This document shows positions 155 through 32,208 of a DNA stretch of 64,000 nucleotides, in pieces. Numbering within the stretch: the stretch's first letter is position 1; every line of letters starts with the position of its first letter. The position numbers and the translations under genes were made by a program. The notes under the pieces were generated by a model. That model was not told the origin of the DNA and searched no databases. It was given only the letters and a program-made list of their open reading frames with translations. Origin of the DNA: Bugula neritina (taxonomy: Eukaryota > Animalia > Bryozoa); contig OZ037773.1 of assembly GCA_964035545.1 (NCBI GenBank), positions 8,895,751 through 8,959,750 of the forward strand, in the 5' to 3' direction.

Positions 155-303
155 GAAAGCAGAGGAAGATAGTAGGCAATACCCAAGACTTGCGCCACCT
201 TCTAAGGCAACCTGTTCCTGCTGGTATGTGTGTAGTGGAAGGACAACTCTGGGTAACACCTTTCTTCCGCGGACTAATAAAATTTAAAATTAAGCAACAA
301 TAA
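155..303 (+). CDS. Terminal coding exon of an upstream array paralog (copy 0); last beta-propeller blade; rest of gene lies before the window
   Basis: Acceptor tgtag| at 154, phase 1. Reads (G)KQRKIVGNTQDLRHLLRQPVPAGMCVVEGQLWVTPFFRGLIKFKIKQQ*. Same 149-nt length and GMCVVEGQLWV motif as exon 20959-21107; also matches 32075-32208. Confidence 0.85.

Positions 304-7263: not shown

Positions 7264-7268
<5 letters not shown>
4706..7268. mobile_element. ~2.56-kb non-autonomous DNA transposon with CACAG...CTGTG termini (CMC/EnSpm-like), flanked by TA
   Basis: TIR cacagttagtttaaggtca / tgaccttaaactaactgtg. Near-identical inverted copy at 12543-15118. Absent from the paralogous site near 23490. Confidence 0.9.
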
Positions 7269-7341
<73 letters not shown>

Positions 7342-8650
7342 TCACCTCGAAGTTCCATGACCCATTACAATATAGGTAAATTAAAATAGCTGCTATAATA
7401 TAATACTACAAGTACAATGCAGTGTAAGTGGTTATTATTTAATAGACAAAGGTATTTAATATAGACTAATATTTATGTGTGGACCTGCAGTAGATGAGAA
7501 ATACAAGATGACTTGTAAGTCTGTACAGGATGTGATGTCACAGAGCAACAGGTATATTATGGTAAATCTTGCGTTACTTTCTCAATACTTTGGAGTTGTC
7601 TTCACACACAGTGTGAAATAAAATACGATTTAAATGAGTCTACATAGTATAATCCTGTGTAATAGTTAATTTTTACAAACATATCGGATTAAAAAGTAAA
7701 TGAATTTTTTCTGAATGAGTGGTTTTTATTCATGTCACAGCCTTTACTTGTCTTATTGTTTGGCGTCTAAGAACACAGCTTCTTGAAGCAATTAATTCAG
7801 TCTAATGAATGAGAATAGTCTGTTGGCAGATTATAGAGGCGTAGAACCAAAGACATTATGGTACTAAGGCTAATCATAACTATACTTAGATTTAACTATT
7901 TGAATATAATTATTATACTAAACAAAGCACTACTTAGCCTGAGAATATGAAGGTACTGAAGCTATAATGTTGATGAATGAGTTGGTTTTGATTTCTAAAG
8001 CTGCGAGCAAATGAATCAAAAATGCTTAATTTACTGGTCAACAACTGTGCTGTTATTCTGAAATGAGAATGTATATAAATTGTTTTCTTAACATTCAATA
8101 TAAGGTTTTGCTGAGCTGCTCAGTCTATGCAATCACAATTATCAAAACATTGTTATGGGTTTATTTAAAAAAGTCTACCAATACACTAATTACAGGCTTG
8201 ATTGGCTTTTGCTTTTAAAATTTTAGACTTGAGGCGAAAGAAAACAAAAGTGAAGCTTAGCATGAGAAATCTTATACAAACATTAGTATGACAAAAGCTT
8301 AAGTTTAGTTTTTGTAAGGGTTTTTCAGAAGTTTTGATTAGCTATTGTAGACTAAATTATTGTTTTAATTATGTTGGGTGCAACTTGTTGAAAGTAACTG
8401 TGAAGGGTAATGACAAAAGCAGTAAGCAGTCAATTGTTGTATAGGCATTACAATTTGAGTATAAAGAACAAATCGATGAGAGGGAGAGTCTATATTATAG
8501 CAGCTAGTAGCTGCATGAGTGCTATTTAGTATTCAATATCTGATTGTTGAATAGGCTTCAAACGTGTATATAAGTTTCTAAGAATCCTCGAATACGTCTG
8601 GCAGATGAGTGTATTTTAATTATTCTTTACATATTATATACATTGTGGCA

Positions 8651-11600
8651 ATGGAACAAGCAGTATCAGAAAGCTCTGGATCTGTGGACTTTAAAGGATG
8701 TAGTGACATACCACTCTGTGTTCTGGTTACAAGTAGAACTACTACTCTGCTTAAACGTGGCATAGCAACTCTTCTAGTGAGAAACACTCAATTTGATGCA
8801 GCAGACCTGTTTCACAATATTGTGAAGTTTCACTCTGATGGTTTGTCTGTAGCTGTTTTAAAAGAGATCAACATTATTGCTACTGTTTTGTCAAAGTTGC
8901 ATCACCCTAACCTTGTGGATATCCAAGGAATTCGTCTTGACATCTCATGGGATCATAAAAATAGAGTCCTCCAAAATGTGCCAAGTTCTTCAAAAATCCA
9001 GCTAAAGAACATTGAAGACAATCTAATACAAGAGATAAGCTCTGGTATCCAACTTCTGGAAGATGACATCATCAAATCTTCCCCAACTGTAGACACCCTG
9101 ACATTTGTAGAAGAAGCTATGACGAAACTCCAGTCCCCCACACCAGCTGAACAGAGAGAAGCCATAGAAGGTCTGGTGGCAGGACTAGTGGCTGGTGTCC
9201 TTGATAAATCTCCTCTCAGTCTGACACGTCTGAGAGACATGTTCCAGGGTGAATTTCCAGAAACTGTAAATGAGTGTCTTCAATATATAGACAGTAGTCA
9301 CTCTCAAATATTGGATAATGGTGGAAAGCTTGAAGGAGATCATGAAATACAAGAACTTCTGGCTCAATACAAGAGATGTGTGAAATTCTTTGTTGGTGAT
9401 TTAAGATGTCTTCCATTCAAATCATCAGATATTGTAAGTTCTTCCTATTAGAAGTCTACAACATAAATAAATGAGACAAAATCATAATAGTATTTGCAAA
9501 GCTTATAAAGAGTTTGCTATTATTTAACTATTTACAAGCTTGCAATAATTTTTAATATTGCAAGCACCTAAAAAGATTATTTCTATAAGCAAGCACTAAA
9601 AGTTTTACACCTATAGCTACCATCTTTGAAAATAAGTATAATCATACAAATGACCTTGATTTTGAAATTAAAATTTCTCATCAGTCTACTTGTTGTTTAG
9701 ATGTTTGAACTGTTTGACAAACTTTTCCTCAATGCTGAAAGCTGTAATGCCATATTGTAAAACTCCGACCAATTCTTTATCATTGTATAATTTTACAGAT
9801 CACCAAAGATCTGGTGGAGATGAGGCCAACTGCTGAAGAGTTGACACTCATTATTACAGGATATGATTGGTGAGTGACTCAATATGTACACCAGTTTAAC
9901 TACCTTCTGTTCTCTTACTTTGCAGAGTAGATAAACATATTGGCTCCTACTGTAATGTACACTAAAATATAATATTCTCCTCTGTCAGGGTGATTTCAAG
10001 AAGAAAGAGCTCTGATAACACAGACACAGATAGAATCAACTTGCTGGCAAAGTAAAATACTATATATTTATATCCTAGTGTTCATTGTGGTGTTAGCTAA
10101 CTTTATATATTTTGCCAGTTTCAAATAGTCCAAAGCTTTATACAGACTATACAAAGTAATATGGTGATTACCAGGATGTTTATATGTTTCCAGAGAACAG
10201 CATTCTATCTGGAGACAAGCCAACCACCATCTGGCTGGTTTATTAGATGGTAAGGAGTCTGGTGCCTTAGATGAGACTCCTGGAGACACTGAAGAGCTGC
10301 AAGAGAAGGTAACTCTATAAGTAAATCATAACTATTAGCCTAGGGCCACACGGTGCGTATTTTCGCATGCAAAAATTGAAATCACGAGCAAAGGTGTCCA
10401 CTGTGCGCGTTGAGAAAACGATCGCACTTGTTGCTCTGCATTCTCAACGCAAGTGCGAATCGTCTCTGTCGTCGTCACCTAATTGGCTGGTATAGTTATT
10501 CAGCGAGCCCAATTTTTTTATTTTAGTGCTACATTCCAGTAAATTGCGTTTTATTAAAAGCGAGTGCAATTTAAAAATGAAAGCTTTATTTATCACGCAT
10601 CACTGACGCTACAGTGGACACCTTTGCTACTTGTGATTTCAATTTTCCCATGTGAAAATACGCACCGTGTGGCCCTAGGCTTAGTTTATAATCTTGATGC
10701 TGATAATCAATACTCTATAACACATGTCATTAACCATGCTAGGGATTTTTTGATAAGCTTTGAAATGCTTTCAACTCAAACCAAATACAGTTTATGAACA
10801 TGGATAATGTATATATGTTACTGGAATGAGTTATAAAACTAACTGTAGCCATTGTATGAAATAGCATGCCATTAAAGCAATCTTTGAGGCCAAAATGAAT
10901 TTTATTTTATATTTTTATAGAATACTGATTTGACTACACAAGAAGTAAACAGTCCTGCACAAACCTCTTCTCAAAGTAAGTACAATAAACTTGTGCTCCA
11001 GTCATTTTTCCCGAATTATGATTAAGTATCAGTACTGATACCAGAATGCTGTTTGTAACAGTGTATTGGGTCTTCTATGAGTTTATTTCATTACGGTCTT
11101 TTATTAGCAATTGCTCTTTACTAATGAGATATTTTATTGTACATATTCTGACTAATACTAACAAAATAGTAATTGCTAGTATACGACAGTTTCATTTTAG
11201 ACAATATGCATTACACCTAGACAAAACTACTCAAATTATGATTATTTTGATGCATCTATAAGACCTACAGATTAATTTCCCCTTAAATTATTTTTTTTAT
11301 TATGAGCAGGAGGAATAAATTTCTTCATTACAGAAAAATTAGTTCACTTATAAAAGGCATATTTTCATTATTAGCCTTTTATTTCAGCTACACCCACTTC
11401 AAAGCATCTGGGTGGCCTTCAAACAGTTCCTTCAGATGTCCCACTGTGTGTTTTGATTGTGAACAGAATTAGAACATTGTTGGTGAAAGCATTAGCCTTT
11501 CAGTTGGTTAGAAAATCAGAATACAACATGGCCGACCTTATTGATGGACTTTCTTCAGTACTTCCTGCCGATTATGGTAAAACCAGCATCAAAGAGCTCA

Positions 11601-14600
11601 ACATCATTGCTAAAATCATATCAAAGATTCAACCTAGAGAAGCAGTAGAAGGTCAGAAAACTCCCGGCATCATTAAATGGGACAACAAATACAACAGATT
11701 GAAAAACGTTCCAACAGGGTTGAGAGTTCAACTGGCAAGTCTTCCATCTTGGTCACTAAAAGTCCCTTGCTTGAACATCTCTTTATTAGAAAAAGACATC
11801 ATCAAATCTTCTCCAACAGTAGAGACATTGACACTTGTCGAAGAAGCTATGAAGAAACTGGAGTCTCCCACACCAGCTAAACAGATAGAAGCCATAGAAG
11901 GTCTGGTGGCAGGACTAGTGGCTGGTGTCCTTGATAAATCTCGACTCAGCTTGACACATCTGATAGACATGTTCCAGGGTGAATTTCCATCATATGTCAT
12001 AAACCTCCTCAAAACTATCAACAATAACCAAGTCCAGATAATGGATAGTGGCAAGAAGATTGAAAATATGGAGTTGAGAGAAGACCTTATCACTGCATTC
12101 AATGATTGTGTGACTTTTCTTATAAAAGACTTCAAGTGTCTCCCAGTCACAGCACCAGAAGAGGTTAGTATGTTAACATAGCATGTTTTGTTTGCTGCTT
12201 TTAATAGTCATGAAAAGTGGTAGATTTTAGAAAGACAATACAGATATTTAAAGTAGCTATTATAATTTTTATTTACATCTCCAAAATTTTATTTTGTGGC
12301 TATAGATACTGTAAACTTCAATCACAGTCGCTATCTCCCTGATAATCCCTGATTGAAAGTTGTTTTCAAGGTGTTGAAAACTTTTTTCTATTGTGGCTAA
12401 TGCCTTTTCTAACATATAACATTTGCTGAGATTAAACTCATTGACATTCACTTATAAGCCAGTGCTCTAACTACTAGACTACTGCTGCTCTTGTGAGCAG
12501 TGTGGAGCCACCATAACTTCTTGGTTTGTAAACAGAATGCTACACAGTTGGTTTAAGGTCATACTTTTCATTTTCTGGCTCTTTGCCAGGTGCTTTATGT
12601 TCTATATGAACAATGTTCCACTGATAGCTCGAACAGGTTGAATGTCACAGGAACAAAAAAATATGAAAAAATAAAGAAACTTATGTTCTCCAATATACTT
12701 TTTTATTTTTTTCAAAAGCCAATTCATGTTTAAGTTATAGCTTGTTGAAAAACATAGTCCCCCTTCCACATTCTTTTCAATTTATACGCTCCTGACTTGT
12801 TATTGTGTCTCAATATGCCTTGTATTTGAGTGCTTGTTAGTCTCGCTTCACTAACTTTGCCTATACTTCACAAGTGCCAGTGCTGCTGGCTCAAAAGCTA
12901 AATGTTATAAACTGTCAGCTAAAACCCAATCTTGTATTCCTAGGTTGGTTGGCCTAAATAAAACAATAGTCAAATCATGATTTCATGTTTTAAAAATTTA
13001 CTCTATTCTAACCTGCTGCCTAGCTAGTTCTATTTTTGATGTATAATTACAAAATTTGTGATACATTTTTTTGGCAACCATGTAATTTATAAAATGCAGT
13101 AATGGTACTTATAATATTATATTATTATCATTATAATATATTATATAGTATTATGTGTGTTTTTATTATCCTGCATAATATCTAATTTATTATTGTTGTT
13201 GTGCAAACAAGTGCAATTAACCTAGTTTTCAAAATGTACCTCTAAATTATCAGAATATCAGTTTAGATATGTTCATGCTTTGTAAGGTAAACCTAAAAAA
13301 AGAGGCTGTATTCCCAAAGTAAAGGGTGTTGAACTATGAACTATATTAGATTAGCCACTCTGCTACCAAGTGCATCAGTATAATATTATATGAATAGCTC
13401 TGATGCTTTGTCTCCGGTGGCTGGCTGCGATATGATAACTTGGCCAACTTCCACGAGTTTAAAATTGGCGCAATTATTCAAGAGGTTACATACTGCACAG
13501 AGCTAGCAGTGATAGTAACCTTGCTATTGGCAGTACTTATTACAACTGCCAGCATATAAGCTGCATTGTAGAATGCCGTTGGGGCAGGCTAGTAAAACCA
13601 AATTCTGCTCTCTAATATACCTTAGACAAAATGCAGCAACATAATTTTTAGTTTCAAATTACATTTGCCACCCTTACATGAGCTGTGGGCTTCATAAAGA
13701 TTCATATGATTAGAGATTTATGCTATAGGCCCTATCTGTGCTAGTGTATGATGAAAATAACACACCATTGTCAAAGTTAACTTCAAGTATGTTGTTTTCC
13801 AGAAACTCAGTAATGTCCATTTATCTCTCGCATACAAATACTTATGTAATAGCATACAGTTTAAGTTTTATTTTAGAGCACATCTGCAAACTCTACAATA
13901 AGAGCTTGCTTTACCAGTCTATTTCAGACCTGTTTTTGTAGCTAGTAATACGCAAGCTACTTATTTTTAAACTTTTGGGTTATTTGTTCAAAACCATTAG
14001 CTTTGCTAGTAACCCGAGACTATTGCAACAGTTGACTGCTATCAACATGAATTGACAGCCTAATAATTATAACCCTTTTGCGGCGCGAAATATTTATGTA
14101 ATGATAGTTACTCATATAGTGCGCATTTTATTAACGATGACTGCGTGGTCTAGAGGTTAGAGGCGTCAGCGAGGAGTTAGTTGGTTATGGTTCACCCCTG
14201 TTTTGTCGCAATTTTTTTTGTCAACTTATGCAAATCCTACGCATGTATAATAAATATGGCTATAATTGTAAAGTTTTTTTTTAACTTTTGTTCAACAGTA
14301 AGACAACATACATGCATAATAATTAGATACTGAACACTGGACTAAACCTGAAATTGATCTTATAGAATACAATGTACTTAAAATAATCATATGTTAATTA
14401 GAGAAACTGAAAGTTCACCTGCTGCTCTATAGACAGACCTTTACTGACAAGACTGCAAAGTGAAGTGATTTAGCTGAAATTAACTCTGCCAAACAAACAA
14501 AGAATTATGTTGTGCTGAGGCATTTTCAATATATTATTGTAACATAGTGAGATGATTCAGCTAAGTGCTAATGTAAAACAGGGAACATTATATTGGCAGA

Positions 14601-17600
14601 AATCCAATAGACTGCCAATTTGTGCGAGAGGGTACTATATGTTATTGTGATAGCGCAGAGCGGCAAACGTACTAGGAATGTTATAATTAGTCACAGGAGC
14701 GTAGCTAGAACCACCATATGAAGAATTTAGAAAATTGCAGTGAAACTTGCAAAATGGTGTATGTTTTTACCAAATTGTGAAGAGCATAAACAGAATTTCA
14801 AAAAACAAAGAAAGTATATTAGAGAAAACATATCAAGGAATGTCAAGTTTCACTTTTATACTTTATAAAATGAATCCCCTGTGCTACAGCAGTGGAACAT
14901 GGAGGGTGTAAAATTTTACTTATTATGCAACAACTTTTTCAAAAAAATTTTTATTGAAAAATTAAAAAAGTATATGAAAGAGGAATGCAAGAGCTATCTT
15001 TTCATGTAAAATTTGTTAATGTGAGACAAAAACTGTTCGAGCTATCCCCTGGAAACCGTTTATATATAACATAAAGCAGTGCCTGAATCTGGAAAGTAAT
15101 GACCTTAAACCAACTGTGTAGAGTTCTATCAGAGAAAGTAAAAGTGTTCCTGAAAAAATTAAAATGGACTTACGTTTGTAGCTATAGTAGAACATCAAAC
15201 CATCTGCTCATTTCTGAGCATTTTTATTCATAGTTCTTGATATTTGAATGTTTAGCTTGCTCTGAACTTTAACAGTGCTATCATTGTTGCAGGCATGTAA
15301 TGAATATCTACGGCACTCTTTAACTGCCGATGAGTGGGAAATGACATTCTCACAGTATGACAGGTATTATGAGGCTATAAGTATTTTTTGTTATTTAAAT
15401 TAAATATCTTTAGCAAACATATATGAAAACATTGATGTTGTATTGTTTAATGTTCTTCACATGTTAAGAGAATTTGCATTTTGCTTTAAGACTTTTATAT
15501 AATGTATTTTTCCTACTAATTATAACTTACCAATAATATGTGCAAACCAATCAGCTACATTTGTAAAGTATGAGAATCAACACGAAAAATATTGAAAGCA
15601 TAGTTGGCCTGATTAAATGCAAGCTAGGTTTGCAGAGAAATGATATTTATATTGCTCATATCTCTAAAACGCTTTCTCGTTACTTGTAGCTACACTCCCT
15701 CCAAAACTTAGATGTGTTTAATTCTTCTCAATGACAATGTGTATGTGATTCTCTCCTCAAAAACAAACAGTGGCAGTTTTTGTCAAAATATGGCAAACTG
15801 AAAGTGCTAATTTTTTCTTTTCTCAACTTCAGAATCATCAGAAATATTGACAACACTGATGGAGCTAGGACAGAGGAAATAAATCTTTTAGCAAGGTAGG
15901 ATACTGGACGATCCTTAGCACACTTTCTCAGTGTAATCAGTTTTACTGATATAAATAAGCTCATTGTATGCATTCACAAGTTTCACTAATCTGAAGCCAT
16001 AATACAAGTTGTATCTTATTTTAGTGAACAGTTCAGTTTATGGAAGAAAACAAATCAATTGCTGGGAGATTCTATTGGAGTACCAAACATTGCTGACATA
16101 AAACCCAGCTACAAGGTACACTTCAAAACAGTCTTCTATAGGGGTAACGGGAGCGCAACGGGCCGAGTTTTGCAGTTTTTGCTCTCATTCGTCTGTTTTT
16201 CAAGTTACTAGTTCAATAATCTCTAGTCTTAATGCTGCATCTGTTGTCTATTACAGGTATCAGTTTATTGTTTCTATCTCTTTCACAACTTTCAGAATAA
16301 TGAAGTTTTCTTGACGAAAAAATCGGCCCATTGTGCCCCAGTACCGGGGTACAATGGGCCACTGGGTGGAACACAACAAATATATTGAAACTTTGCAGAT
16401 TTTGTTGCATCTGATTTTTATTTATTTAATATTACAAACAAATAAAATTATTCTTTCAGATCTACAGCAAAATTCATGTTTTAGCTGTACAGTTTGTGCC
16501 ACCACGGATAGCAGAGGAAGGCAAAATCAAACGAACATCACTTGGTTCTACGGTGCCATTATCATTACTGTTTAGAACTAAAAATGTTTTCTTTTACACT
16601 CCAGAAAAACTTTTAATAGAAAAAAACTTTAGTAACTTGTACTACATAAGTCTGAGTGGACTTTTTTCTATGAACTGTAGCTTATAAGGTGCATGGCTTC
16701 GGTTTGTGGCTAGAGTATGGAAGGAAGAGGGGGGAGCAAATGAGCAAATCACAATTTATTTTAGTCAAATACATCTATATTCCTTCAATGATATAAAGTA
16801 TAATAAATATCATGGCTATCTACTAGTAGCAACAGCAGAGTGTTTTGTATTATGTATAAAATAGCAAAGCTTTAACCTCACCAGATGTATATATTAAGGG
16901 AGCTTCACCTTGTAGTTTGGTAGTCTTACCATGATGTCTTTGATATTTTACAAAAAGGTCAGAAATGGCTATATCTATAGATTTTAGTAACATTTCAATC
17001 AACTTTTTGGGCAAACAAACTAATAACAGTGATCAGGGTACAATAATCAGGTGGCCCATTGTGCCCCGGTCAAGGTGGCCCATTGTGCCCTGAATGGCCA
17101 AATTTGACACAAACGTGCCTTAAGAAAAGTTTATTTTAGAGTTTGCTGTTATACTAGTTAAGTGTAATAGTATTATATTTAAAGGATTGCTCTATCTTAG
17201 TTTATTACAATCACATTATAATTATGAACTATAATCTAATGTGTATGCAAACAATTGTGACTTTGCAAAGGGATATATGCCTAGAAAACAGCTTTTCAAA
17301 ATTCCAATTTTGAGGGAGGTAAAATTTTCAGCCATGAAAAAGAATAGCCTAATACGTGACGTGTGAACGCCAGTAACTATGCTGCACGTGCTAACTATAA
17401 CGCTAGTATTCAAGGTTGCTGAGCGCAACATCAACCAATAACGCTCAAGCAGTTACAGTGCGCTATATAGGTCAGCTTTGGTGGGCCCGTAATATTGCAC
17501 AATCTGACCTAGTTTAGATCGATCGCAGGCATTCATCCTAAAGAATGCATGTTTTTGCAATGCTTTTTTCTATGTTTACAAGCAAAATATGGCCTAATGT

Positions 17601-20600
17601 TATCACATACATGTTATTAAACATGTCAAAAAACTATAGATTGAGATAATTCACATTTGCACTTCTATAAATATACAAATTACGAGCTGAAAGATCACAT
17701 CTCACAGTCATATTTCTATAGTTATTCATTTGTATAGTCACGTGACCAGCAGGAATGCTGGCGCTGTTACGTCACATTTCCCAGCTCATTTCAAAATCGG
17801 CGTTTTGGCTGTTACCAATCTACACCCTCAACTTCAACTAACTTTTTCTACCTTTGGTCAAATGCTTTTTGTCAATGCATGTTTAGAAAAACACAATAAT
17901 ATGTGTGTTTGACCTAAATGGCCATTTATTAGACAAGATAGAGCAATCCTTTAAAGTTCACTAAAATATCTTTATTTGGAAATCACAACTGATCACTACG
18001 AACACATATCTAAAACTGACAATATATACAAACAAAAAGGATAAAGAGATTTAGAACACAAAGGAACAAAGCACAACTATATTAATATTTATAAAACAGG
18101 TTACATAACTGCGTGCACATTACATTAAGCAATGTAGAGACAAGCAATGGCAACAATATCAGTAAAATCTATGCTTGTTGCTTTTGAGTGTAAAAAGTTA
18201 TAAAGCTATTTTACAAAAAGTAGGTAAAAACGGTTTTTCACTCGCCTTTTCAACACTTATGTTCCGCAAGTGTTGAAACTACAAAGGCTGAATAATTATG
18301 TCAATATCTTTTTATGAAAAAAAAAAATCGCAATTCCAAGTCAATAAGTTCTCTCACAATTTGGCCGGCTTTTTGTACTCCTATGACCGTTGTGGCCCCG
18401 TTACCCCTGTAGTGAATTTCCCAATTCACTATATTATGTGAGTCTACTTATACAAAGCTACTGCACCAGGTTGATCACGTTATTATTTACAAAGGTACAA
18501 TAAATGAACTACTACTAAATTAATTGCACGATTACATAATACTGAGCACTTTGTACGCAACTACTCTATGCCAAGTTCCAAGCTGCTCTGCCCGGCTAGC
18601 TACTTAGCTTGCTTCCACTATGAGTAGCTAGCTCCACCTGATATCAATTAACAGTCCTTCCTGATTGGCTAGTATTAGTCGTGCCACTGTCGACCATAAG
18701 ATGCATGTCGGCTGGGAGTCGATGCCTCCACAATAAGATAACATAGAGTCGACCCTTTCGATATATAAACTAGACCACTAATTGCATTACTAAATCCACT
18801 ACACCCCTACTACAGTTATTATACTATAGTGGCAGTAATACATAGCACAAGTATATAGTAGTGATATGCTATCTTATTCTTTGTACTATATTTATAGAAG
18901 AAAGATGAATATTCAACGCTAGTTGGAGAAGCTGCTAGCTACAGCAGCTCTCAACTTGAAGGTATGAGTCTAATGGAGAATCTGAAACTAAGTGAAGGAG
19001 CTGCCGGAGACAGCAGCTTTCAAAGTAAAGGTATGACTATATATGATGTATATAACATGTTAAGTAAAACTATTAAAGTGTAGTGAACTAGAAATGCTAA
19101 ATAATTCATTACTTTACATATTATATTTAACCTACAAACTTGAAATCACTTTGATTGTGTTGTTTTATACATAGTATCTTTATATATAGAGGGTTGCCTA
19201 CAGTTACTAGCTATATACATTAAACAATATGTCACTAATAACATTTGATGAAATGCTTTTTTTGATAATATTATATGTGTATTTTATGCATATCCTTCTA
19301 TTTGAGTATATAGTATTTATTTATAGAATTTGCTTCACAGCTTTATATCTATTTATAATATAATCTAGTAATATCGGTAATGTTGCAGCTGGTACAGAGC
19401 TTCAATACAGTCTAGGTGATTACTCTGTTATCTCTGGAGGTCCCTACACTGATGTAACTGATGGTGGAGGGCATAATATACTAGTTGGTAGAGAGGGAGG
19501 GTTTGATGTATTGGATACTAGTAAAGTATCTGAATCTAGCAGTAGTGTAGGAGGGAGGAGATATGAGATAGTGAAGTCTGTCAGAATAGAAGGGGTGGGT
19601 TTTGTTTGGTCAATACAGAGATATGAGAGCTGTATATATACTCTGTGTAGAGTATATGATCAGTTTCAAGTAGTAGTGTTTGATGCTAACACATATGTTG
19701 AAGTAAAGAGATGGTCTGTACCAGAGGTTGTATCACTCCTTACTAGACTAGCTGTGTGTGATGAGAAGGTCTATATGGTAGATCTCATACATAAACAGCT
19801 AACTGTATTCTCTACAGATGGTAAACACCTCACTAATATTACACATTCTAGTTTCATTGAGCCCTCTGCCCTCTCTGTATGCCCTCCACACAGTATCATC
19901 ATATGTGACTACCCAGCTAACAGAGTACATAAACTAGACACTACAACACATAACATCATATGGAGTTCTACTGCAGTGAAAAGACCTGTAGCAGTATGCT
20001 GTGACCACACACGTGGAGAAGTGTGGGTGTGGCCTTATGATACTGACTGTCTATCCATTCTAGACTCTGAGACAGGTATGCAGCTAATCGTGTTGTGTTT
20101 TTAGTTAGTGTCATTACTAACTCACAGTCTATATATAAGGTTTTAGTTCAAACAATTCTTGTGAGCTACCAGGTTTCAACTAATATTTTGTGCACTGTTT
20201 TGTGGGCTAATAATTTTGCTAAACTATGACACATGAAACAATAACAAAGAAACGTATAAAATTGTAGTTTTATAAATTCTATATATCAATATGCCACTTG
20301 AATTCGTTATAGATTTTACTAACTTAATGTTATTACAAACGTCTAATATACCTTTATATTTAAAGTCCTATGTGTTGACCTAGTTTTCTCATTAGTCTTG
20401 AAAAATTTTTCAAATGTAACAGGTAGTTTTATTCAACATTGAAAAATTTTTGAGTACTGTACCGTGTGGTAAAATTACAACTAAGTATATATTTGTATGA
20501 AATTTGTATAAGGTTTACTTTATATAAGTATAAAATAAAACGTAATATTATTAGATGGTATAAAGGGAAAATGTGGTTACAATTGGTGTGTACACTATAG

Positions 20601-21107
20601 AGTTATCTCATCACAACAGTTGGAAAACTTTATGGTAATGTCCGCTGCAGCATCTCAGCTAAACATTCTATTCATGAAATAAATCAACTTCTTGCAAATT
20701 TAACAGAGACCTAGATTCTAGAATCAAATAGAATCTTTGATTTTCTGGTGCAATTGAAAACAGAGAGGGTAACAATATAATATATGGAAAATAGAAAGGG
20801 TAACTAGATGTAATGGATATTGAGAGAAAAACTCCATGTAGTGGATAGAGAGAGGGAAACTCTATGTAATGAATTAGGAGGGTACATGAATTTGAGTTAT
20901 TTAATTTTTTCAGGTGCGAAACTTGAACTTGTAATTTAATCAATAATACATGTTGTAGGACAGCAGAGGCAGATAGTAAGGGATACTCGACCCTTGCGCC
21001 GCTTTGTAATGGAAAGTCTTCTTCCTGGTATGTGTGTTGTGGAAGGACAACTCTGGGTAGCATCTTCATCTCGTGGACTAGTAAAGATTAGAATTAACAG
21101 ACACTAA
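8651..21107 (+). CDS. Array gene copy 1: two tandem catalytically degenerate HEPN-like modules + linker + NHL-like beta-propeller (~1018 aa)
   Basis: Hand-spliced GT-AG exons with consistent phases: 8651-9433, 9799-9869, 9989-10051, 10194-10308, 10921-10975, 11388-12163, 15293-15363, 15833-15895, 16025-16115, 18898-19030, 19389-20075, 20959-21107 (3057 nt, open). Exon sizes match copy 2. Propeller motifs include LAVCDEKVYMVD...LTVFSTDG, PSALSV..IIICD..RVHKLD and PVAVCCD..GEVWV. Start codon is probable, not certain. Confidence 0.85.
10338..10680. mobile_element. PIF/Harbinger (Tourist-like) MITE in an intron
   Basis: TTA|gcctagggccacacggtgcgtatttt...aaaatacgcaccgtgtggccctaggc|TTA; ~70-bp imperfect TIRs; empty site in copy 2 (~26375). 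Confidence 0.9.
12543..15118. mobile_element. Second, inverted copy of the CACAG-terminated non-autonomous transposon, in intron 6 of copy 1
   Basis: TA|cacagttggtttaaggtca...tgaccttaaaccaactgtg|TA. Reverse complement of 4706-7268 with few differences. Confidence 0.9.
17163..18124. mobile_element. Short solo-LTR-like insertion (TGTAAT...ATTACA, 5-bp TSD TTAAG), itself interrupted
   Basis: ttaag|tgtaat...attaca|ttaag. The empty site is visible in the first MITE copy (~2720, gttaagcaatg). Confidence 0.75.
17183..17950. mobile_element. TTAA-target non-autonomous DNA transposon (Kolobok-like AGG...CCT termini)
   Basis: TTAA|aggattgctctatct ... agatagagcaatcct|TTAA. Confidence 0.8.
18408..18803. 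mobile_element. Solo LTR (TGTAGTG...CACTACA, 4-bp TSD CCCC; Gypsy-like)
   Basis: TG...CA termini with a 4-bp duplication; related copy at 35546-35899. Confidence 0.85.
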
Positions 21108-24100
21108 TGATTTTCTGTTTGCTCAGTGAAGACAAAATTCTGCATTAAGTGACTGCTATGAAACTTTTTGTCATTTAGAATAACTAGTTTAATTATTTTT
21201 CTGCTGCAGCAGAAATTCAACTAAACTATATATATTGCATTTTACATGATTTACCAATCATTTATATATTAAACGTAATAAAATAAAGACCTTTCAAAAT
21301 AGTTTTTCTATAGTTTCTGTATTTTAGAGCTTGTTTTATCAACTAATTGAACTATCAGATATTCAGTAATTCATATAGAAATATAACCTCAAATTTGATA
21401 ATAATAAACTGTATAGATATAGATATACTTACTGCATAGGATTAATATTTTATGTAAATACATAAAAATAAACTTCTACCATCCAGTGTGTGTCTAATTG
21501 TCCATAATTCACATTATATTTCATGTGTGCGTTTCATGTGCTCGTAAATTATAGTTGCATATTGTTTTGGTGTCAGGGAATCAATTTGAATCTAGACGTA
21601 GTATAGTGTAGTTTAGTTTCTAATAATAAAAACGAGAAAATTCCAAAAGTTGTAAACTTTATTTTTTAAAATATTTTATTGAGCAAAGTAATATAAAATT
21701 ATTAAAAAAAGTATAAAAAAAATAATAAGAAATATGCAAAAATAAAAATTATGCAAAGCCATAATTGATCAGAGAAAACAAAACAAGTCTTCAGTTGGAC
21801 ACAGAGATTGAGCTAACTGATTATTGCAAAAAGTCACAGGTGTTGAATACATTGAATATATATGTATTATAGTATACTGAATTGTCTCTCCTTTAATCTG
21901 AATGTGCCATGTATCTCTACATGTCAACAAAGTAGAAGTTCACTTACTCCCATATATATACTAACATCACTGTGAGAGACCTGTATAAGCTGGCTATAGC
22001 TAGACTTGTGGTCGCCTGTCACATTAAACTCAATTTTAAAATAGAAAATATCAATAATATATGCTTGTAATCTGTCAGCATCTAATAATGGCCAAGTATT
22101 CACACAACTAAAGGATATTAATTGATGAAGGATCCAACAACCCTGGTGCTTCAGATAGTCTTTTGGAGACTGTCAAGAGATTCCTGGGAAAGCAACTCCA
22201 TATGTGTAGCATAGAGGTAGTGAGATGTCCATACTTTATAAAACATTGTATTAATGGCTATATATCCCAGAGAGCATGGTATCATTTGATAGAATGTTAC
22301 TTCGACTAGTTGCATAACATTTCATGAGACTTAGCCTTTATAACTGCGCAATTTAGCATATGGTATAAGCCATGAGGTAATAATGTGTCTGCAACACGTA
22401 TGTGTGAACTGTAGCGAAATTTTATATTATTTCCTGCAGCAGATCAACTTAACATAATTTTGATTTTTAAAATTGAAGCAAATTTTTCCTTTCCCGTAAA
22501 GATGACACACTGCTTAGATTTTCAATTGACACATGATGAGTTTTTAAATGTATGAGAATAGAATTTCTATCTGGTGTATGCCCTAGTCCTTGTTTACTTA
22601 ATATATTTTATAACTCCATAAGTTAGTTGTGTGCTGTCATGGTTTTGAAAAATCAATTTTAATCTACAATTTAGATAGTAATGTTATTTAGTTTTCAACA
22701 ACAAAACTGAAACAATTTGAACAGTTGTGAACTTCATGATATATGAGTTATCTAGCAAATTTATAGATTACGAATTTCATAAGAATTGGTCAGTATGTAT
22801 TTCTGTAATGTGGGAATATAAAAACCTGTCAATTCACTACATACTTCTACTTGCATGTTTAGTATATGTAATACATTGACATACAGAGTCAAAGTGAGAA
22901 ATAGGAGTTATCAGTCCACCAACGTAATACTTGGTGGAAAAGAAATTTGTTGTGAGTTCTATGAATTTGTTTGCTTAAACTTGAGCAAAAGTTGCTCATT
23001 AAATATATATTATTATTTCAGTTGCAAATGTGTCAAAATGGTAGCATATATTTAATGAATATATAGGTAAATACAATATAATATAGTTATAATTTTTAGG
23101 TTTGTATGTGGGTATTTGTGTATGATCCAATTGGCGCATTGTAGACAGTTACGTAAACTCCAAATGATTATAGCGTGAGAATAATTATAATATGATAATG
23201 TGTATCGTTTATACAAGATACAATAATAAGAAAACTTTACATCAGTCAGAAAGCTAATACAATTGTTTACACAAGTGTTTACTGTTAGCCCAGGTAGTCT
23301 TTACTGACACCTGAGAATATTTTCCCTCGTTACCATAGGCTGGCCAGCTTCATCCTGATTGGAGAATTGGGGAGCAGTCACATCATCAGCCACGTGGTCG
23401 CCTTATGACAAACGGGGCAATATAGGAAAACGCTATGACTAGTCACCACCCATGATATATATAATATTATATATATATATCACGGGTGGTGATATATGTA
23501 TAATATATATCACCTCAAAGTTCCATGACCCATTACAATATAGGTAAATTAAAATAGCTGTTATAATATAATACTACAAGAACAATGCAGCGTAAGTGGT
23601 TATTATTTAATAGACAAAAGTATTTACTCTGGACTAATATTTATGTGTAGATCTGCAGTAGATGAAAAATACAATTAGATGACTTGTGAGTCTGTACAGG
23701 ATGTGATGTCACTGAGCAACAGGTATGTTATGGCAAACTTTCCTTTACTTTCTCAATACTTGGGAGTTGTCTTCACACACTTAAGGCACAATAAAATACA
23801 ATTTAAATGAGTCTACATAGTATAATAATGTGTTATAGCAAATTTTTTACATAAATAGAATTGAAAAGTAAATGATGTTTCTCAGCGAGTGGTTTTTAGA
23901 CACAGCCTTTACTTGTCTTAGTTTAGAGTCTGGAGAACACAGCTTTTTGTAGCAATTAATTCTGTCAAATAAATGAGAATAGTTTGTTGGCAGATTATAG
24001 AGGCGTAGAACCAAGGACATTATGGTACTGAGGCTAATCATAACTATACTTTGATTTTACTGTTTTAATATACTGGTATTATACTAAATAAAGCACTACT

Positions 24101-24708
24101 TAGCCTGAGAATATGAAGATACTGAAGCTATAATGTTAAAAAATTAGTAAGTTATTGATTTCTAATGCTGAGAGAAAGTGTATCAGAAATGCTCATTGAA
24201 TTACTGAGTAACAATTGTGTTGTTATTATTAAATTGTTTGATCATCATTCTATAGATGTTGCTGAGCTGTCTATGCAACTGCAAGTGAAAACATAAGGTG
24301 CAGCTTATATATTTGAAAAAAAACTTTATACATACATTAGGATGACAAAGCAGGGCCTTCAAAGGAGTTGATTAGCTGTAGCAGAATATAATAAGACTAG
24401 GATCAGATGTATTGATTTCATTTTGGTACCTTTTTTCAACTAATTGTGAGAGATTAATCAAAACAAAAGCAGAAGGCAGTCAATTGTTTCATAGGCATAA
24501 CAATTTGGGTCTAAAGGATCAATAAAGGGGAAAGACAATCTATATCTAAACTAGCAGATGAGTACTAGCATTCAATATCTGTCAGGTAAATAGATCTTTT
24601 GCTTGTATAACTTTCTAGAATCTGCATAAAAAACTATTTCTTTTTTGTATGACTATGTCTCACGGATTACTGTAGTTTAACTACTTTTTACATATAAACA
24701 TTGCGGCA

Positions 24709-27700
24709 ATGGCACAGGCAGTATCAGCAAGCTCTGGATCTGTGGACCTTAAAGTATGGAGTGACATACCACTCTGTGTTCTGGTTACAAGTAGAACTAC
24801 TACTCTGCTTAAACATGGCATAGCAACTCTTCTAGTGAGAAACAGTCAGTTTGATGCAGCAGACCTGTTCAACAATCTTGTGAAACTTTACCCTGATGGT
24901 TTGTCTGAAGCTGTTTTAAAAGAGATCAACATTATTGCTACTATTTTGGCAAAAGTACATTATCCAAACCTTTTGAATATCCAAGGAATTCGCCTTGACA
25001 TCTCATGGAATCATGAAAATAGAGTCCTCCAAAATATGCCAAGTTTTTCAAAGGTCCAGCTAGAGAACATTGGAGATAATCTAATACAAGAGATCAGCTC
25101 TGGTATCCAACTTCTGGAAGATGACATCATCAAATCTTCTCCAACAGTAGAGACACTGACACTTGTAGAAGAAGCTATGAAGAAATTCCAGTCTCCCACA
25201 CCAGCTGAACAGAAGGAAGCCATAGAAGGTCTAGTAGCGGGACTAGTGGCTGGTGTCCTTGATAAATCTCCACTCAGCTTGACACATCTGCTGGACATGT
25301 TCCGTGGTGAATTTCCAGAAACTGTAAATGAGTGTCTCCAGTATATAGACAGTAGTCACTCTCAAATATTGGATAATGGTGGAAAGCTTGAAGGAGATCA
25401 TGAAATACAAGAGCTTCTAGCTAAATACAAAAGATGTGTGAATTTCTTCATTGGTGATTTAAGATGCCTTCCACTCAAATCATTAGATATTGTAAGTTCC
25501 TTATATTGGAAGTCTACAACATAAGTAAATGAGACAAAAAATATAATATTATTTGCAAAGCTTATGAAGAGTTCGTTATTATTTAACTATTTACATTCTT
25601 GCAATAATTTTTTATGTTGCAAGCACCTAAAAAGATTATTTCTAAGCAGGCACTAAAAGTATTGCACCTATTGCTACCATTTTTGAAAAAAGGTATAATC
25701 ATACAACTGACCTTGACTTTGAAATTAAATTCCTCATCAGTCTACTTGTTGTTTAGATGTTTGAATTGTTTGAAAACCTTTTCTTCCATGCTGAAAGCCC
25801 GAGGTGCTATATTGTACAACTCCAACCAATTGCATATATCATTGTATTTTTCAGATCACTAAGGATCTGGTAGAGATGAGACCAACTGCTGAAGAGTTGA
25901 ACTTCATTATCACAGAATATGATGAGTAAGTGACTCAATATGTACACCAGTTTAACTCTTTCTATTCTCATACTACACAATGTAGGTATAAGTGTATAAG
26001 CTATTACTATAACACTAAAATATAATATTATATTCTGTCAGGGTGATTTCAAGAAGAAAGAGCTCTGATGAAAGAGATGCAGATAGAATCAACTTGCTAG
26101 CAAGGTAAGAGACTATGTATGCATATCCTAGTGTTTACTGTGGTGTTAGCTAACTTTATATAATTAGTCAGTTTCAAACTGTCCAAAGTTATGAAAAGTA
26201 ATATGGTGATTACTAGATTTTTTATATGTTTCCAGAGAACAGTATTCTATCTGGAGACAAGCCAACCACCATCTGGCTGGTTTATTAGATGGTAAGGAGT
26301 CTGGTGCCTTAGATGAGACTTCTGGAGACACTGAAGAGCTGCAAGAGAAGGTAACTCTATAAGTAAATCATAACTAGTAGTCTATAATCTTGATGCTGAT
26401 AATCAGTACTCTATAACACATATCATTAAGCAAACTAGGGATTTTTTGATAAGCTTTGAAATGCTTTCAACTCAAACCAAATACATTTTATGAACATGGA
26501 TAGTGTATATATCAGTTACTGAAATGAGTTATAAGAATAGCTGCATGCGTGTGCCATTGTATGAAATAGCATGCCATTAAAGCCATCTTTGAGGCTAAAA
26601 TAAATCTTATTTTATATTTTTATAGAACACTGGTTTGACTACAAAAGAAGTAAATACTTCTGCACAAAGCTCCTCTCAAAGTAAGTACAATAAACTTGTG
26701 TCTCAGTCATTTTCCTAAATTATGATTAAGTTCTAGCATTAGTACCAGAGTACTATTTATAACAGTGTATGAGATTTTCTATGAGGTTATTTTATAGCGG
26801 CCTTTTGTTAACAATTGCTCTTTACTAATGAGATATTTTATTGTACATATTATACTAACTAATACTAACAAAGTAGTAATTGCTAGTATACCCCAGTTCC
26901 ATTTTAGACATTATGTATTAGACTAAGTCAAGGCTACTCAAATCATGATTATTTTGATGCTTCTAAGACCTACAGATTGATTTTCCTTTAAATTATTTTT
27001 CTTGTGACATTATTTTATTGTGAGCAAATCATAGCTTAAATTTTTCATTACAAAGAAAGTAGTTCACTTATAAAATGCATGTTTTCATTATTAGCTTTTT
27101 TATTTCAGCTACACCAGCTCCAAAGCATCTGGGTAGTCCTCAAACAGTTCCTTCAGACATTCCGCTGTGTGTTTTGATTGTGAACAGAATTAAAACATTG
27201 TTGGTGAAAGCATTAGCTCTTCAGTTGGTTAGAAAATCAGAATACAACATAGCCGACCTTATTGATGGACTTTCTTCAGTACTTCCTGCCGATTATGGTA
27301 AAACCAGCATCAAAGAGCTCAACATCATTGCTAAAATCATATCAAAGATTCAACCTAGAGAAGCAGTAGAAGGTCAGACAACTACCGGCATCATTAAATG
27401 GGACAACATAAACAACAGATTGGAAAACGTTCCAACAGGGTTGAGAGTTCAGCTAGCAAGTCTTCCACTTGGGCCACTAAAAGTTTGTTGCTTGAACATC
27501 TCTTTATTAGAAGGCGTCATCATCCAAACTCTACCAACCGTAGAGACATTGACACTTGTAGAAGAAGCTATGAAGAAACTCCAGTCCCCCACACCGGCTG
27601 AACAGAGAGAAGCCATAGATGGTCTGGTGGCAGGACTAGTGGCTGGTGTCATTGATAAATCTCCATTCAGTTTGACACGCCTGATAGACATGTTTTGTAG

Positions 27701-30700
27701 CGAGTTTCCACCATCTGTCATAAACCTCCTCAAATTTATCAACAATAACCAAGTTCAGACAATGGAAAGTGGCAAGAAAATTGAAGATATGGAGCTGAGG
27801 CAAGTACTTGTCGCTGCATTCTATGACTGTGTGATTTTCCTTATCAAAGATTACAAATGTCTCCCAGTCACAGCACTAAAAGAGGTTAGTATGTTAACAT
27901 AGCATGTTTTGTTTACTGATTCTAATAGTCATGAAAAGTGGTAGATTTTATGAAGACAATACAGATATTTAAAGCAGCTGTTATAATTTTTATTCACATC
28001 CCCAAAAGTTTATTTTTTGGCTATAGATACTGTAAACTTTCATTACAATTGCTATCTCCCTGAGAACCCCTGATTGAAAGTTGTTTTCAAGGTGTTGAAG
28101 ACTTTTTTCTATTGTGGCATTTATGACAGAAATCCTTTTTTAACATCCAACATATTTTGCTTCAATTAGACACATTGACATTCACTTATAAGCCAGTGCT
28201 CTAACTACTAGACTACTGCTGCTCTTGTGAGCAGTGTGGAGTCACCAGAACTTCTTGGTTTGTAAACAGAATGCACGAGTAGTTCTATCAGATAAAATAA
28301 AAGTGAATTCTTGGTATAATTAAAATGTTGGAACGTCTGGTAAAAAAAGGTTTTCATCATGGGGCTAGAGATTGTTTTTTTATTCTGGCATTTATGTCAG
28401 CATGCCTTTTGTAACATCACTGATGGTTTTTAATAAGAGTAGACTCACTGACGTTCACTAAGCCACTAAGCAATGTGGATCTATCAAAACTTTTTGGTTT
28501 CTATCAGAATGCTATAGAGTTCCATCAGATATAAAAAAGTGAATTTTTGGTAGAATTAAAATGGACAGATTTGTAACTATAGTAGAGCATGAATCCATCC
28601 GCTCATTTCTGAGCCATTTTATTTAGTTTTTAATATCCGATTGCTTAAAGCTTGCTCTGAACTCAATCACTGCCATCATTGTTGCAGGCTTGTAATGAAT
28701 ATCTACAACTCTCTTTAACTGCAGATGAGTGGAAAATGACATTCTCACAGCATGACAGGTAATATGAGACAATACACAAGCTATTATTCCTCATCACAGC
28801 TCTTGCAATATATGGACTTGGCTGAAATATGTATATGTAAATAATCTACATGTATAATATAAGTAAATCAACAGTTACACTCTCTGAGATGAAAAGTATA
28901 GTTGGTTATTTGATTAAATATAAGCTATAATGTTTAATTCAAAAAATTATATTTATGTCGCTTATTACTGGAAAGTTTTCTTGTGCAACTTATTACTATA
29001 CTTTCCCTGAAACTCAGATATCTTCAATTCTTTTCAGCAGCAATAATAACTGTTTCTTGAAAACATAGCTGTGATAGTTTTAGTCAAAATCCACAAACTA
29101 AAAGTGCTAAAATATTTTCTTCTCCACTTCAGAATTATCACAAATATTGACAACACTGATGGAGCTAAGACAGAGGAAATCAATCTTTTAGCAAAGTAAG
29201 ATTTTGAGCCATTATTAAATATTAATATCTGGACAATTGTTTACTTATATTAATTTACAAGTTTCACTATTCTGAGGCCATAGTTCAAGTTGTATCTGGT
29301 TGTAGTGAACAGTTCAGTTTATGGAAAAAGACAAATCAGTTGCTGGGAGATTCTATTGAAATACCAAACATTGCTGACATAAAACGCATCTACAAGGTAA
29401 TTGACAACTATAGAGCAAAGCAAATTGTTCTACTATAGTTATATACTACTAGCTCTAGTACAAGTAGCAGTTGTAGCAGTTGTAGTAGTGGTGGTGGCGA
29501 TGGCGGTGGTGGTGATGGTATCATCAGCAGTAACCATTTAAGGATATAGCTTAGTTGCTTTAGTTGGTCTGACCAGAATAGCTGAAGAAGTATTATATCA
29601 TGTGCTTTATATAATTTGATTGCTTGGTAAATTATCAACCTTGATGGTTCCATTTATGTTTTTGTTATTCCTTGTACTATTTATAGAAGAAAGATGAATA
29701 TTCAACACAAGTTGGAGGAGCTGTCGGATACAGCAGCTCTCAACTTGAAGGTGTGACTCTGATGGAGAATCTGAAACTAGGTGAAAGAGCTGCCAAAGAC
29801 AGCATCTCACAACGTAAAGGTATGACTATAATGTATAGCATGTCGTAAAACATTTTAAGTAATATGAACTACATTTATGCTAAATAATTAATTAGTATAA
29901 TTGGGGTATTGAACCTGCAAATTTGAGATCAGTTAGATTGTCTTATTCTGAGCAAGAGTCTTTGTGTGATGGTTAGCGAACGTATATACTACTCTCACGT
30001 GTTGGGCATCCAATAAGACTGAAGCACGTGATTACCCCTTCCGGAACAGGATGCTTCAGTAAGACAGATAGAGTAGTTAATTAGTAGGAGCGCGTTAGTA
30101 AATGTAGTAGGCTTGTATTAGATTGTAAATGTATTTTCGACACTGGATGTGTCTCTCTTTATTTTATATGAGTACAACAAATATAGTTCATTGTGTCACG
30201 CTACCAACAGAGTAATTCATCTAGTTACTAAGTGAATCCACCATCATTGCACACACGCAGAACCCACCCTAAGATGATAATTGGCAGAATTATTACATTT
30301 GTATACAGAGTTGTCTTCTTAGCTGCTGTGTAAAGTAATGATACTACAGTTAATTGCTATTTCTGCAAATTGAATGCAAACAACCATGAGTGTACAAATT
30401 GCTTTATATAATATTTTATGTGTATTTTATACAATATTGAGTTATAATACATTAAAGCATTCATTTATAAAATTTGCTTAAAAGCTTTATTCATTCTAAT
30501 ATATTCATTTATAATATAATCTGTTAATATATGTATTGTTGCAGCTGGTACAGATTTTCCGTACAGTCTAGATGATTACTCTGTTATCTTGGAAAGTTAC
30601 TGCTATGACGTAGCTGATGGTGGAGGGCATACTATACTAATTAGTAGATGGAAAGGGTTTGATGTATTGGATACTAGTAGTAAAGTATCTGAATCTAGCA

Positions 30701-32208
30701 GTAGTGTAGGAGGGAGGAGATATGAGATAGTGAAGTCTGTCACAATAGAAGAAAGTGGTTTTATTCGGTCAATACAGAGATATGAGAGCTGTATATATAC
30801 TCTGTGTAGAGTAAATGGTCAGCTACAAGTAGTAGTGTTTGATGCTAACACATATGTTGAAGTAAAGAGATGGTCTGTACCAGAGATTGTAGGATACCTT
30901 ATTAAACTAGCTGTGTGTGATGAGAAGGTATATATAACAGATTACAGACATAAACGGCTAACTGTATTCTCTACAGATGGTAAACATCTCACTAATATTA
31001 CACAGTCTATAAGTTTCATTGAGCCCTCTGCCCTCTCTGTATGCCCTCCACACAGTATCATCATATGTGACTTCTCAGCTGACAGAGTACATAAACTAGA
31101 CACTACAACACATGACATCATATGGAGTTCTACTGCAGTGAAGATACCTGTAGCAGTATGCTGTGACCACACACGTGGAGAAGTGTGGGTGTTGTCTTGT
31201 TATACTGACTCTCTGTTCATTCTAGACTCTGAGACAGGTATGCAGCTAATCATGTTTATTGTAAGTTTAATGCCACCACATACTATATATATAGTTTGAT
31301 GTATATGTTGTTTCGGTGTAAATAGGGCCTGTAATACGGACAGGTTTCAAATCTTAACTTTGTGCAATTTTTATATGGCTAATAATTCTGCTAAACCATG
31401 CAGCATATGAGACAATATGAGACAATAGTAATACAACTTCTGAAATTATAGCCTTGTAATTTCTATATACCCAACTTAATGCATACTTGACTACATTAAA
31501 TTTCAATTACTTTTTATTATTGCAAACAGGCCTAATATAATCATATTTCGGTCCCCTTTGTTAGGCTAGTTTTATCATTCTCCTAAGAAAGTTCTTGAAA
31601 CATAATGGCAGTTTTACTCCATATAAGCTACATTCTGTTTAAAAGTAGAACATCTCCTTCAGCATAGAACCTTGTGTTCCAGAGAGCCCTGCACCATGTG
31701 GTTATTGAGTCTAAACGCATGTATAAAATTTAATATAGTATATAGTCCATATAAATATATAATTAAACATATTAAGGTAGAAGTTAATTGTATATTTGCA
31801 ATAAATGTGTAGACTGTAGAGTTATCTCATCACAACAGTTGGAAAACTTTATGGTAATAACTGCTGCAGCATATCAGCTAAACATTCTAATCATGAAATG
31901 AATGAAATTTTTTTCAACTCATATGAATTCTAGATTCTAGAACAAACATTACTATTTGACTTTCTGGTGCCATTTATATGGAAAATATAAATTATAAGTT
32001 ATTTATTATTTTCATGCAAAGGTAAAGCTTGAATTTGGAATTTAATAAAATATATATACTAATACATTTTGTAGGAAAGCAGAAGCAGACAGTAAGCAGA
32101 AGAGAAGACTTTTTATCTTCTCCTTTTGGTATGTGTGTAGTGGAAGGACAACTCTGGGTAGTATCTTCCTTCAGCGGACTAATAAAACATAAAATTGTCA
32201 CCCACTAA
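24709..32208 (+). CDS. Array gene copy 2: two degenerate HEPN-like modules + NHL-like beta-propeller (~1015 aa)
   Basis: Exons 24709-25491, 25855-25925, 26042-26104, 26236-26350, 26626-26680, 27109-27884, 28688-28758, 29133-29195, 29306-29396, 29687-29819, 30545-31237, 32075-32208 (3048 nt, open). Same phases as copy 1. Confidence 0.85.
29965..30297. mobile_element. Solo LTR (TGTGAT...ATTACA, 4-bp TSD TTTG)
   Basis: tttg|tgtgatgg...attattaca|tttg; absent from the matching intron of copy 1 (~19180). Confidence 0.8.

Follow-up and report, generated by a model that had tools for sequence, protein, structure and literature searches.

Evidence for positive selection on top-face loops and for sequence exchange between copies in a tandem array of propeller genes of the bryozoan Bugula neritina

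The stretch of DNA analysed here, 64,000 nucleotides of chromosome 9 of the bryozoan Bugula neritina (positions 8,895,751-8,959,750 in the 216-Mb assembly; hereafter the window), contains part of a tandem array of genes, each of which encodes one or two helical modules, a linker, and a β-propeller in a predicted protein of about 930 residues. The propeller exon is present in five close copies in tandem on this chromosome, at a spacing of 10-20 kb. Copies 4 and 5 of the array are the exon pair at 19389-20075 and 30545-31237 of the window, referred to below as exons A and B, and the propeller exon of copy 3 stops 636 bp ahead of the window start. Genome-wide, more than 146 more distant copies of the exon are found, in arrays on other chromosomes. 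In propellers, the BC and DA loops share one face (here the top) and the AB and CD loops the other (the bottom). In this study, positive selection on the BC and DA loops of the array members is supported by tests that allow for rate variation and recombination, and the copies have exchanged sequence with one another.

Exon A belongs to gene 4 and exon B to gene 5; these exons, and all others given below, lie on the forward strand. The former encodes blades 1-5 in an open frame of 228 codons, read from 19391, with AG/GT borders and splice phase 1-1, and the latter has the same borders and phase and 230 codons read from 30547, with RNA-contig joints leading in at 30543/30545 and out at 31238. 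Matches in tblastn to the other copies and to the C-terminal ends of full-length relatives locate the last coding exon of gene 4 (20959..21107), whose splice phase fits that of exon A. It supplies strand D of blade 5 together with blade 6 and the stop codon; the first half varies, and the core MCVVEGQLWV is conserved. The last coding exons of gene 5 (32075..32208, with the frame open to the stop) and of gene 3 (155..303) were placed by homology to other copies. RNA contigs join 31238 to about 32126, but this joint is imprecise, and the contig alleles differ in the variable first half of the last exon.

The N-terminal part of the protein is best resolved in gene 5. Its first coding exon is probably the module-1 exon (24709..25491), an open reading frame of 261 codons from the ATG, whose donor at 25491 was placed by phase with the next exon. 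The latter is a small linker exon between modules 1 and 2 (26626..26680), with a donor joint (26680>27109/27118) present in two RNA runs and an acceptor set from phase. The module-2 exon (27109..27884) is entered by the GT..AG joint 26680>27109 and left by an imprecise joint at about 27873-27884>28686. It is followed by linker exons at 28688-28758, 29133-29195, and 29306-29396, all with GT..AG joints in RNA-like contigs, and by a further linker exon with alternative 5' donors (29687-29750 or 29687-29819). Both donors, 29750 and 29819, are in phase and give isoforms that differ by 23 residues immediately before the propeller. The RNA-like contigs, which come from three studies, carry the GT..AG joints 26680>27109, 28755>29130, 29195>29306, 29394>29685, and 29748>30543, and the exon limits were set from such joints after phase checking. 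From module 2 to the stop, the joined exons of gene 5 form a single open frame of 652 amino acids (629 in the short form). In gene 4, the module-1 exon (8651..9433) lies in an open reading frame at 8609-9451, its end having been set by homology with gene 5, and the limits of the module-2 exon (11426..12175) are those of a protein match (C9:8907176-8907925). In a DNA run of another specimen the introns were covered, and none of the joints of the RNA contigs was present. For another specimen of that sequencing project (run X3), DNA contigs match 26350-32349 in short pieces only, mostly 90-99% alike, which may reflect high polymorphism at this locus or a varying number of copies. Neither a signal peptide nor a membrane span is evident in the predicted protein of gene 5, and from their sequence the array proteins are probably cytosolic.

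The AlphaFold2 model of exon A is of good quality, with a mean predicted local distance difference test score (pLDDT) of 87.8 and a predicted template modelling score (pTM) of 0.86, and its 19 strands make up blades 1-5. The remaining propeller strands come from the last exon, which would complete a closed propeller of six four-stranded blades of about 45 residues each. In Foldseek, the exon model retrieved β-propellers, including the NHL domain of Thin (6d69, TMq 0.65) and PknD (1rwi, TMq 0.63). As WD40 and YVTN propellers score like NHL, the class of fold is well supported, but the NHL subtype is less certain. Copy B has a marginal match to Pfam NHL (PF01436), consisting of one repeat at E=2.4e-4 and 21.4 bits against a cut-off of 20, and copy A has no NHL match in Pfam, only sub-threshold similarity to DUF5128, a six-bladed propeller, and MRJP.

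Modules 1 and 2 are 47% identical to each other; between genes 4 and 5, module 1 is 85% and module 2 83% identical. In protein databases the modules occur only in Bugula, and the genome holds 20 copies of them. The AlphaFold2 model of module 1 of gene 5 is all-α (pLDDT 83.6) and gave no match in Foldseek. In VIA-align, HEPN domains rank first, with Z scores of 6.5-8.7 (2hsb 8.7, Roquin 8.7, Csm6 7.2, sacsin HEPN 6.8), a weak match, as helical bundles with Z below about 13 may represent a common arrangement. From this comparison of models, the modules can be called HEPN-like helical domains only as a weak assignment. The catalytic R-x(4-6)-H motif is absent in modules 1 and 2 of all array genes. 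The modules before the propeller have no Pfam match at all, thus none to a RING or B-box domain, and there is no RING-like open reading frame between the previous gene and the module-1 ATG. Among distant relatives, the same type of propeller follows a RING/B-box (P0027, P0028) or a protein kinase (P0008). The 1-1 phase of the propeller exon, together with these varied N-termini, suggests that the exon has been shuffled onto different N-termini.

An earlier note on this DNA, made by eye from the letters alone, had put the differences between exons A and B at about 46 amino acids, about 5 codons altered only silently, and two one-codon indels, and in a codon alignment the counts are exactly 46, 5, and two. 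By the Nei-Gojobori method, the 9 synonymous and 56 nonsynonymous differences (Sd and Nd) correspond to a dS of 0.060 and a dN of 0.114, i.e., an ω (dN/dS) of 1.9, a value that falls short of significance for a single pair (Fisher p=0.086). The introns are indeed far more diverged, as had been stated: the flanking 300 bp on each side show a Jukes-Cantor distance of 0.43 and many indels, against 0.10 for the exon, and the introns of the pair are 4-8 times more diverged than the silent sites of the exon. The clustering of the changes was likewise seen, although its position needs a slight correction: in each blade the changes precede strand A and follow strand B, and do not come just after strand A.

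Two Joint Genome Institute (JGI) metagenomes, presumably associated with Bugula, supplied thirteen further variants of the exon, with 72-81% protein identity, and the Bugula draft genome supplied a fourteenth. The draft-genome copy (L031, 10570-11253) contains an in-frame TAA and a frameshift and was excluded from all tests. A JGI variant close to it (L032:300-1016) is intact and has 11 codons (SGEVWVWSHYT) duplicated within blade 5. In another variant (L035:1627-2352), 4 codons are duplicated in the DA2 loop and 10 are inserted in the BC3 loop, so that length changes also occur in the loops of the top face. The test set comprised 15 exon variants, namely the five long-read genome copies and the ten JGI variants with DNA, and all 15 are intact and have the same splice borders. 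One-to-one alleles between the genome and other individuals were sought and not found; the best matches are 80-90% alike even in introns, and for this reason no clear allele of the genome copies could be named. Decay of the copies into pseudogenes, or relaxed constraint, was rejected in view of the intact frames and splice sites and of the spliced RNA contigs.

Site models were fitted with our own GY94-F3x4 implementation. Over the 15 sequences, dN/dS exceeds 1 in 95 of the 105 pairs (mean dS 0.107, mean dN 0.145), and model M0 gives a whole-exon ω of 1.54 (p=5e-5 against 1). In the fixed-partition test, the loop and strand classes were taken beforehand from the AlphaFold model, and each class was given its own rate scale. 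The BC and DA loops of the top face (42 codons) have an ω of 2.61, with a likelihood-ratio test (LRT) value of 21.3 against ω=1 (p=4e-6); the AB and CD loops of the bottom face (46 codons) have an ω of 1.02 and the strands (121 codons) one of 1.32, neither of which is significant. The five genome copies alone give 2.45 for the top loops (p=0.013) and 1.00 for the bottom loops. A dual-rate test, in which the site-rate classes are free in both the null and the alternative, yields twice the log-likelihood difference (2ΔlnL) of 78.5, against 2.2-8.7 in four neutral mosaic simulations. The neutral null kept ω at or below 1, used the three rate classes estimated from the data, and assigned every sixth of the exon a tree of its own. 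As an internal control, the N-terminal modules of these five genes have a dN/dS of 0.40 (module 1) and 0.38 (module 2), with dS about twice as high.

It had been expected from the pair of exons that the variable sites would lie on one face of the propeller instead of being scattered, and this is what was found. Between exons A and B, 19 of the 42 top-loop residues differ and none of the 46 bottom-loop residues (Fisher 5e-8). Residues with a posterior above 0.95 in a partitioned M2a analysis number 15/42 in the top loops and 1/46 in the bottom loops (Fisher 4e-5), and the selected strand sites in that analysis mostly adjoin a BC or DA loop. With the same posterior threshold, the dual-rate model identifies 8/42 top-loop and 0/46 bottom-loop residues (p=0.002). 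It is by this BC/DA face that NHL and WD40 domains bind their partners.

The pairwise homoplasy index (PHI) test detects recombination within the exon, both among the five genome copies (p=0.0005) and among all 15 variants (p<0.0005). Copies 1 and 5, which are 52 kb apart, are identical over 345 nt (codons 36-151), a tract that spans 72 polymorphic sites (p<0.0002). It includes about 78 silent sites, though the introns of these two copies differ by about 35%, and the probability of such identity by chance is about 2e-14. Shorter common tracts are shared by copies 3 and 4 and by copies 2 and 3 (p=0.0004), and the nearest relative of a given copy switches between the upstream intron, the exon, and the downstream intron. 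The earlier note had attributed the uniformity of the scaffold to gene conversion. Exchange within the exon is borne out by these results, but its restriction to the scaffold is not, as the 345-nt tract holds four hypervariable patches; conversion therefore spreads and recombines loop variants besides homogenising the scaffold. As for targeted hypermutation, either somatic or of the diversity-generating retroelement (DGR) type, it was considered in passing without a mutation-spectrum test, and nothing points to it.

Several features of the surroundings bear on the array or lie beside it. A 2.6-kb inverted duplication (4704-7270 and 12541-15120; 96.8% identical) flanks both module exons of gene 4, and it accounts for the doubled distance between propeller exons 3 and 4. 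Downstream of gene 5, a 240-codon open reading frame at 37472-38191 encodes a distant relative of the modules. At the aligned place, this paralog has an RNxxxH motif (TRNNIVH), as does L067, and its sequence makes it a possible active HEPN RNase next to the array. Blocks of tandem repeats occupy 38470-39220, 43503-44073, 57311-57793, 58350-58735, and 60178-60426, all downstream of the array, and the open reading frames that cross some of them translate as simple repeats. Elsewhere in the genome, an array on chromosome 3 (C3:30789800-30875700, L068-L078) consists of 11 propeller exons spaced 7-11 kb apart, one of which (L074) is truncated. It shows the same constant frame with variable patches, and ten copies give an M0 ω of 0.57 and a 2ΔlnL of 88 for M1a against M2a, by the standard test only.

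Taken together, the pattern matches that of a germline-encoded recognition repertoire, in that the dN/dS of the top loops exceeds 1 in a manner robust to rate variation and recombination and sequence is exchanged between the members. We consider it rather probable that exons A and B are the ligand-binding propellers of array members whose top face has been diversified by selection and between which conversion takes place; the step from this to recognition is one that we infer. Under such a mechanism, the BC and DA loops would form one face on which selection favours new amino acids, and the strands and the opposite face would stay nearly uniform. Conversion or unequal exchange between copies would move tracts of tens to hundreds of bases, which would hold silent divergence in the exon well under intron divergence and would bring loop variants together in new combinations. 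The top face would bind a variable non-self ligand, most likely a component of a pathogen or virus inside the cell, and the N-terminal modules may relay the signal by assembly, not by cleavage of RNA.

Positive selection itself has to be weighed against another account, in which unconstrained loops drift neutrally, conversion erases the silent differences of the scaffold, and a dN/dS above 1 is an artefact. A number of our observations speak for caution in this respect. The dS of the exon (0.04-0.11) is far under the divergence of the introns (0.2-0.6), and the 39 most variable codons, which were chosen for their variability, have a non-silent diversity of 0.415, not clearly above the intron divergence p of 0.3-0.4, so that the excess is measured against silent sites lowered by conversion. 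Neutral simulations with rate heterogeneity and mosaic trees imitate a strong M2a signal. The comparison of M1a with M2a gave a 2ΔlnL of 248 on one tree, 161 with six partitions each with its own tree, and 57 for the five genome copies alone, and that of M7 with M8 gave 264; the neutral null analysed on one tree, however, itself produced M1a/M2a values of 132-160, with a spurious class of ω about 4.4. Both comparisons were therefore discarded as support, and since the standard site tests are unreliable here, the case rests on the dual-rate and fixed-partition tests. The whole-exon ω of 1.54 is only modest evidence as well, as it ranged from 0.70 to 1.35 in the neutral replicates, one of which reached the upper value. 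In addition, just four or five replicates of the neutral null were simulated, ten of the 15 sequences are contigs from short-read metagenomes and possibly chimeric, the dual-rate LRT falls to 19.0 on the five genome copies alone, and the faces were assigned from the strand order of the model and not from coordinates. The RNA contigs are only 92-99% alike to the window, and what they document is expression and splicing of the family in the way described, not of copies 4 and 5 specifically.

Despite these points, we regard an explanation without positive selection as improbable. Conversion removes silent and non-silent differences alike in each tract and thus cannot raise the ratio of the top loops. 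These loops exceed an ω of 1 on their own rate scale, whereas the equally exposed bottom loops do not. The dual-rate value lies far outside the range of the null (2-9), and 15 of 15 exons keep their frames and splice sites. What stands of the diversifying selection claimed in the earlier note is therefore the elevated ω of the top loops and the dual-rate result; the pair of exons on which the claim was built is not significant by itself, and the PAML-type M7/M8 comparison that had been proposed as a check is inflated. For conversion-prone tandem families in general, it follows that standard PAML-type site tests can yield spurious LRT values above 100.

If selection has diversified the top face, there is still the question of what this face recognizes. 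An intracellular sensor of non-self is the most likely reading, and allorecognition is a less likely one. In the latter case, the array would label colonies or kin, and negative frequency-dependent selection would keep the variants of the top face, as in the fungal het genes and the fusion loci of Hydractinia and Botryllus. Bugula is colonial, and the draft-genome paper anticipated allorecognition genes. Copies from other individuals are never closer than 72-81% in protein and 80-90% in flanking DNA to any genome copy, and the DNA of another specimen matches the locus only in pieces that are 90-99% alike. This polymorphism is apparent only, not established, as the other individuals may belong to cryptic sibling species. 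The closest evolutionary parallel, het-d/het-e of Podospora, serves allorecognition by means of cytosolic propellers (PMC1805685). A point against this role for the array is the lack of a signal peptide or membrane span in its protein, as would be expected of an intracellular sensor more than of an allorecognition molecule on the cell surface. The known animal allorecognition molecules are, to our knowledge, surface proteins so far. The occurrence of the same pattern in another array and the more than 146 related exons across the genome also suggest a broad repertoire of receptors more than they do one or two fusion loci. We therefore hold a role as an allorecognition determinant to be unlikely.

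It is also conceivable that the propeller tracks some other fast-evolving, endogenous partner, as in gamete or larval recognition, in the management of symbionts, or in an element that is selfish or engaged in conflict. A positively selected binding face does not reveal the kind of partner, and Bugula carries a vertically transmitted symbiont (PMC7576161). The HEPN-like modules would belong to a superfamily that is common in conflict systems (PMC8195603). No specific evidence supports such a partner, and an arrangement in several tandem genes that shuffle sequence among themselves is characteristic of receptor repertoires, so that we give this explanation little credence. The intracellular non-self sensor thus remains the most likely of these readings.

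The nearest parallel to the array is the HNWD family of Podospora anserina (het-d, het-e, and het-r; NACHT-WD40), in which the WD40 repeats evolve in concert and four surface positions per repeat are positively selected (PMC1805685; PMC2873952). Both systems are multigene families with a cytosolic propeller as the recognition domain, putatively so in the array, with selected positions on one face, and with the rest homogenised by exchange within or between members. In contrast to the array, the repeats of HNWD are of the WD40 type, are swapped as whole units, and vary in number, whereas the array exchanges whole-exon tracts between tandem genes and keeps a fixed number of blades. HNWD proteins also have a NACHT nucleoside triphosphatase (NTPase) and a HET or other effector, in place of which the array has HEPN-like modules and no NTPase, and the repeat-induced point (RIP) mutation that acts in HNWD has no counterpart in the array.

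Within the same genome, the chromosome 3 array shares the type of propeller and the patchy variation, but the chromosome 9 array has a higher whole-exon ω (1.5 vs 0.57) and a larger share of variable sites. The relatives with a RING/B-box differ from it at the N-terminus, where the array has one or two HEPN-like modules instead. The canonical NHL proteins (Brat, LIN-41/TRIM71, Thin/TRIM32, and mycobacterial PknD) have a six-bladed propeller of about 280 residues, like the array. In Brat and LIN-41, it is the top face that binds the partner. Unlike the array, the canonical NHL proteins are single-copy, conserved developmental regulators, and the sequence similarity of the array to NHL is marginal.

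In vertebrates, the antiviral proteins TRIM5alpha, TRIM22, and fish finTRIM resemble the array in their tandem, lineage-specific expansions, their intracellular location, and their C-terminal binding domain with positively selected loops (PMC2533329, PMC3137616). However, the variable domain of TRIM5alpha, TRIM22, and finTRIM is B30.2/SPRY and not a propeller, and the N-terminus of the array proteins is not a ubiquitin ligase. The NHL-bearing TRIMs of vertebrates form a slowly evolving group (PMC2533329), and a positively selected face on an NHL-type propeller is therefore unexpected for that fold. In the limited literature collection available to us, nothing was found on NHL repeats in bryozoans or on diversifying selection on NHL propellers.

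Fusions of HEPN or Death-like domains to variable WD40 propellers are expanded in oysters, amphioxus, and sponges, marine invertebrates like Bugula, and have been read as immune sensors (PMC8195603). As presented there, these fusions are similar to the array in having a predicted N-terminal effector or adaptor and a C-terminal variable propeller that is said to diversify by recombination. They combine WD40 with DED/TRADD-N adaptors, and no report of a site-level selection test on them was found there, whereas the array has HEPN-like modules without the catalytic motif.

With its five genes and a defined face on which about 13-23 selected residues have been identified, the array provides a testable candidate. 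It represents an animal case of the fungal mode of building a repertoire, i.e., a uniform propeller scaffold with a selected surface and exchange between copies. We know of no characterised immune-receptor or allorecognition genes in Bryozoa. Tentatively, then, and with more doubt than attaches to the selected top face itself, the array might be an undescribed class of animal intracellular non-self receptor that joins pseudo-HEPN modules to a diversified NHL-type propeller. It would be a bryozoan counterpart of the NWD/het genes of fungi and might offer the first molecular access to bryozoan immunity or to colony and kin recognition.

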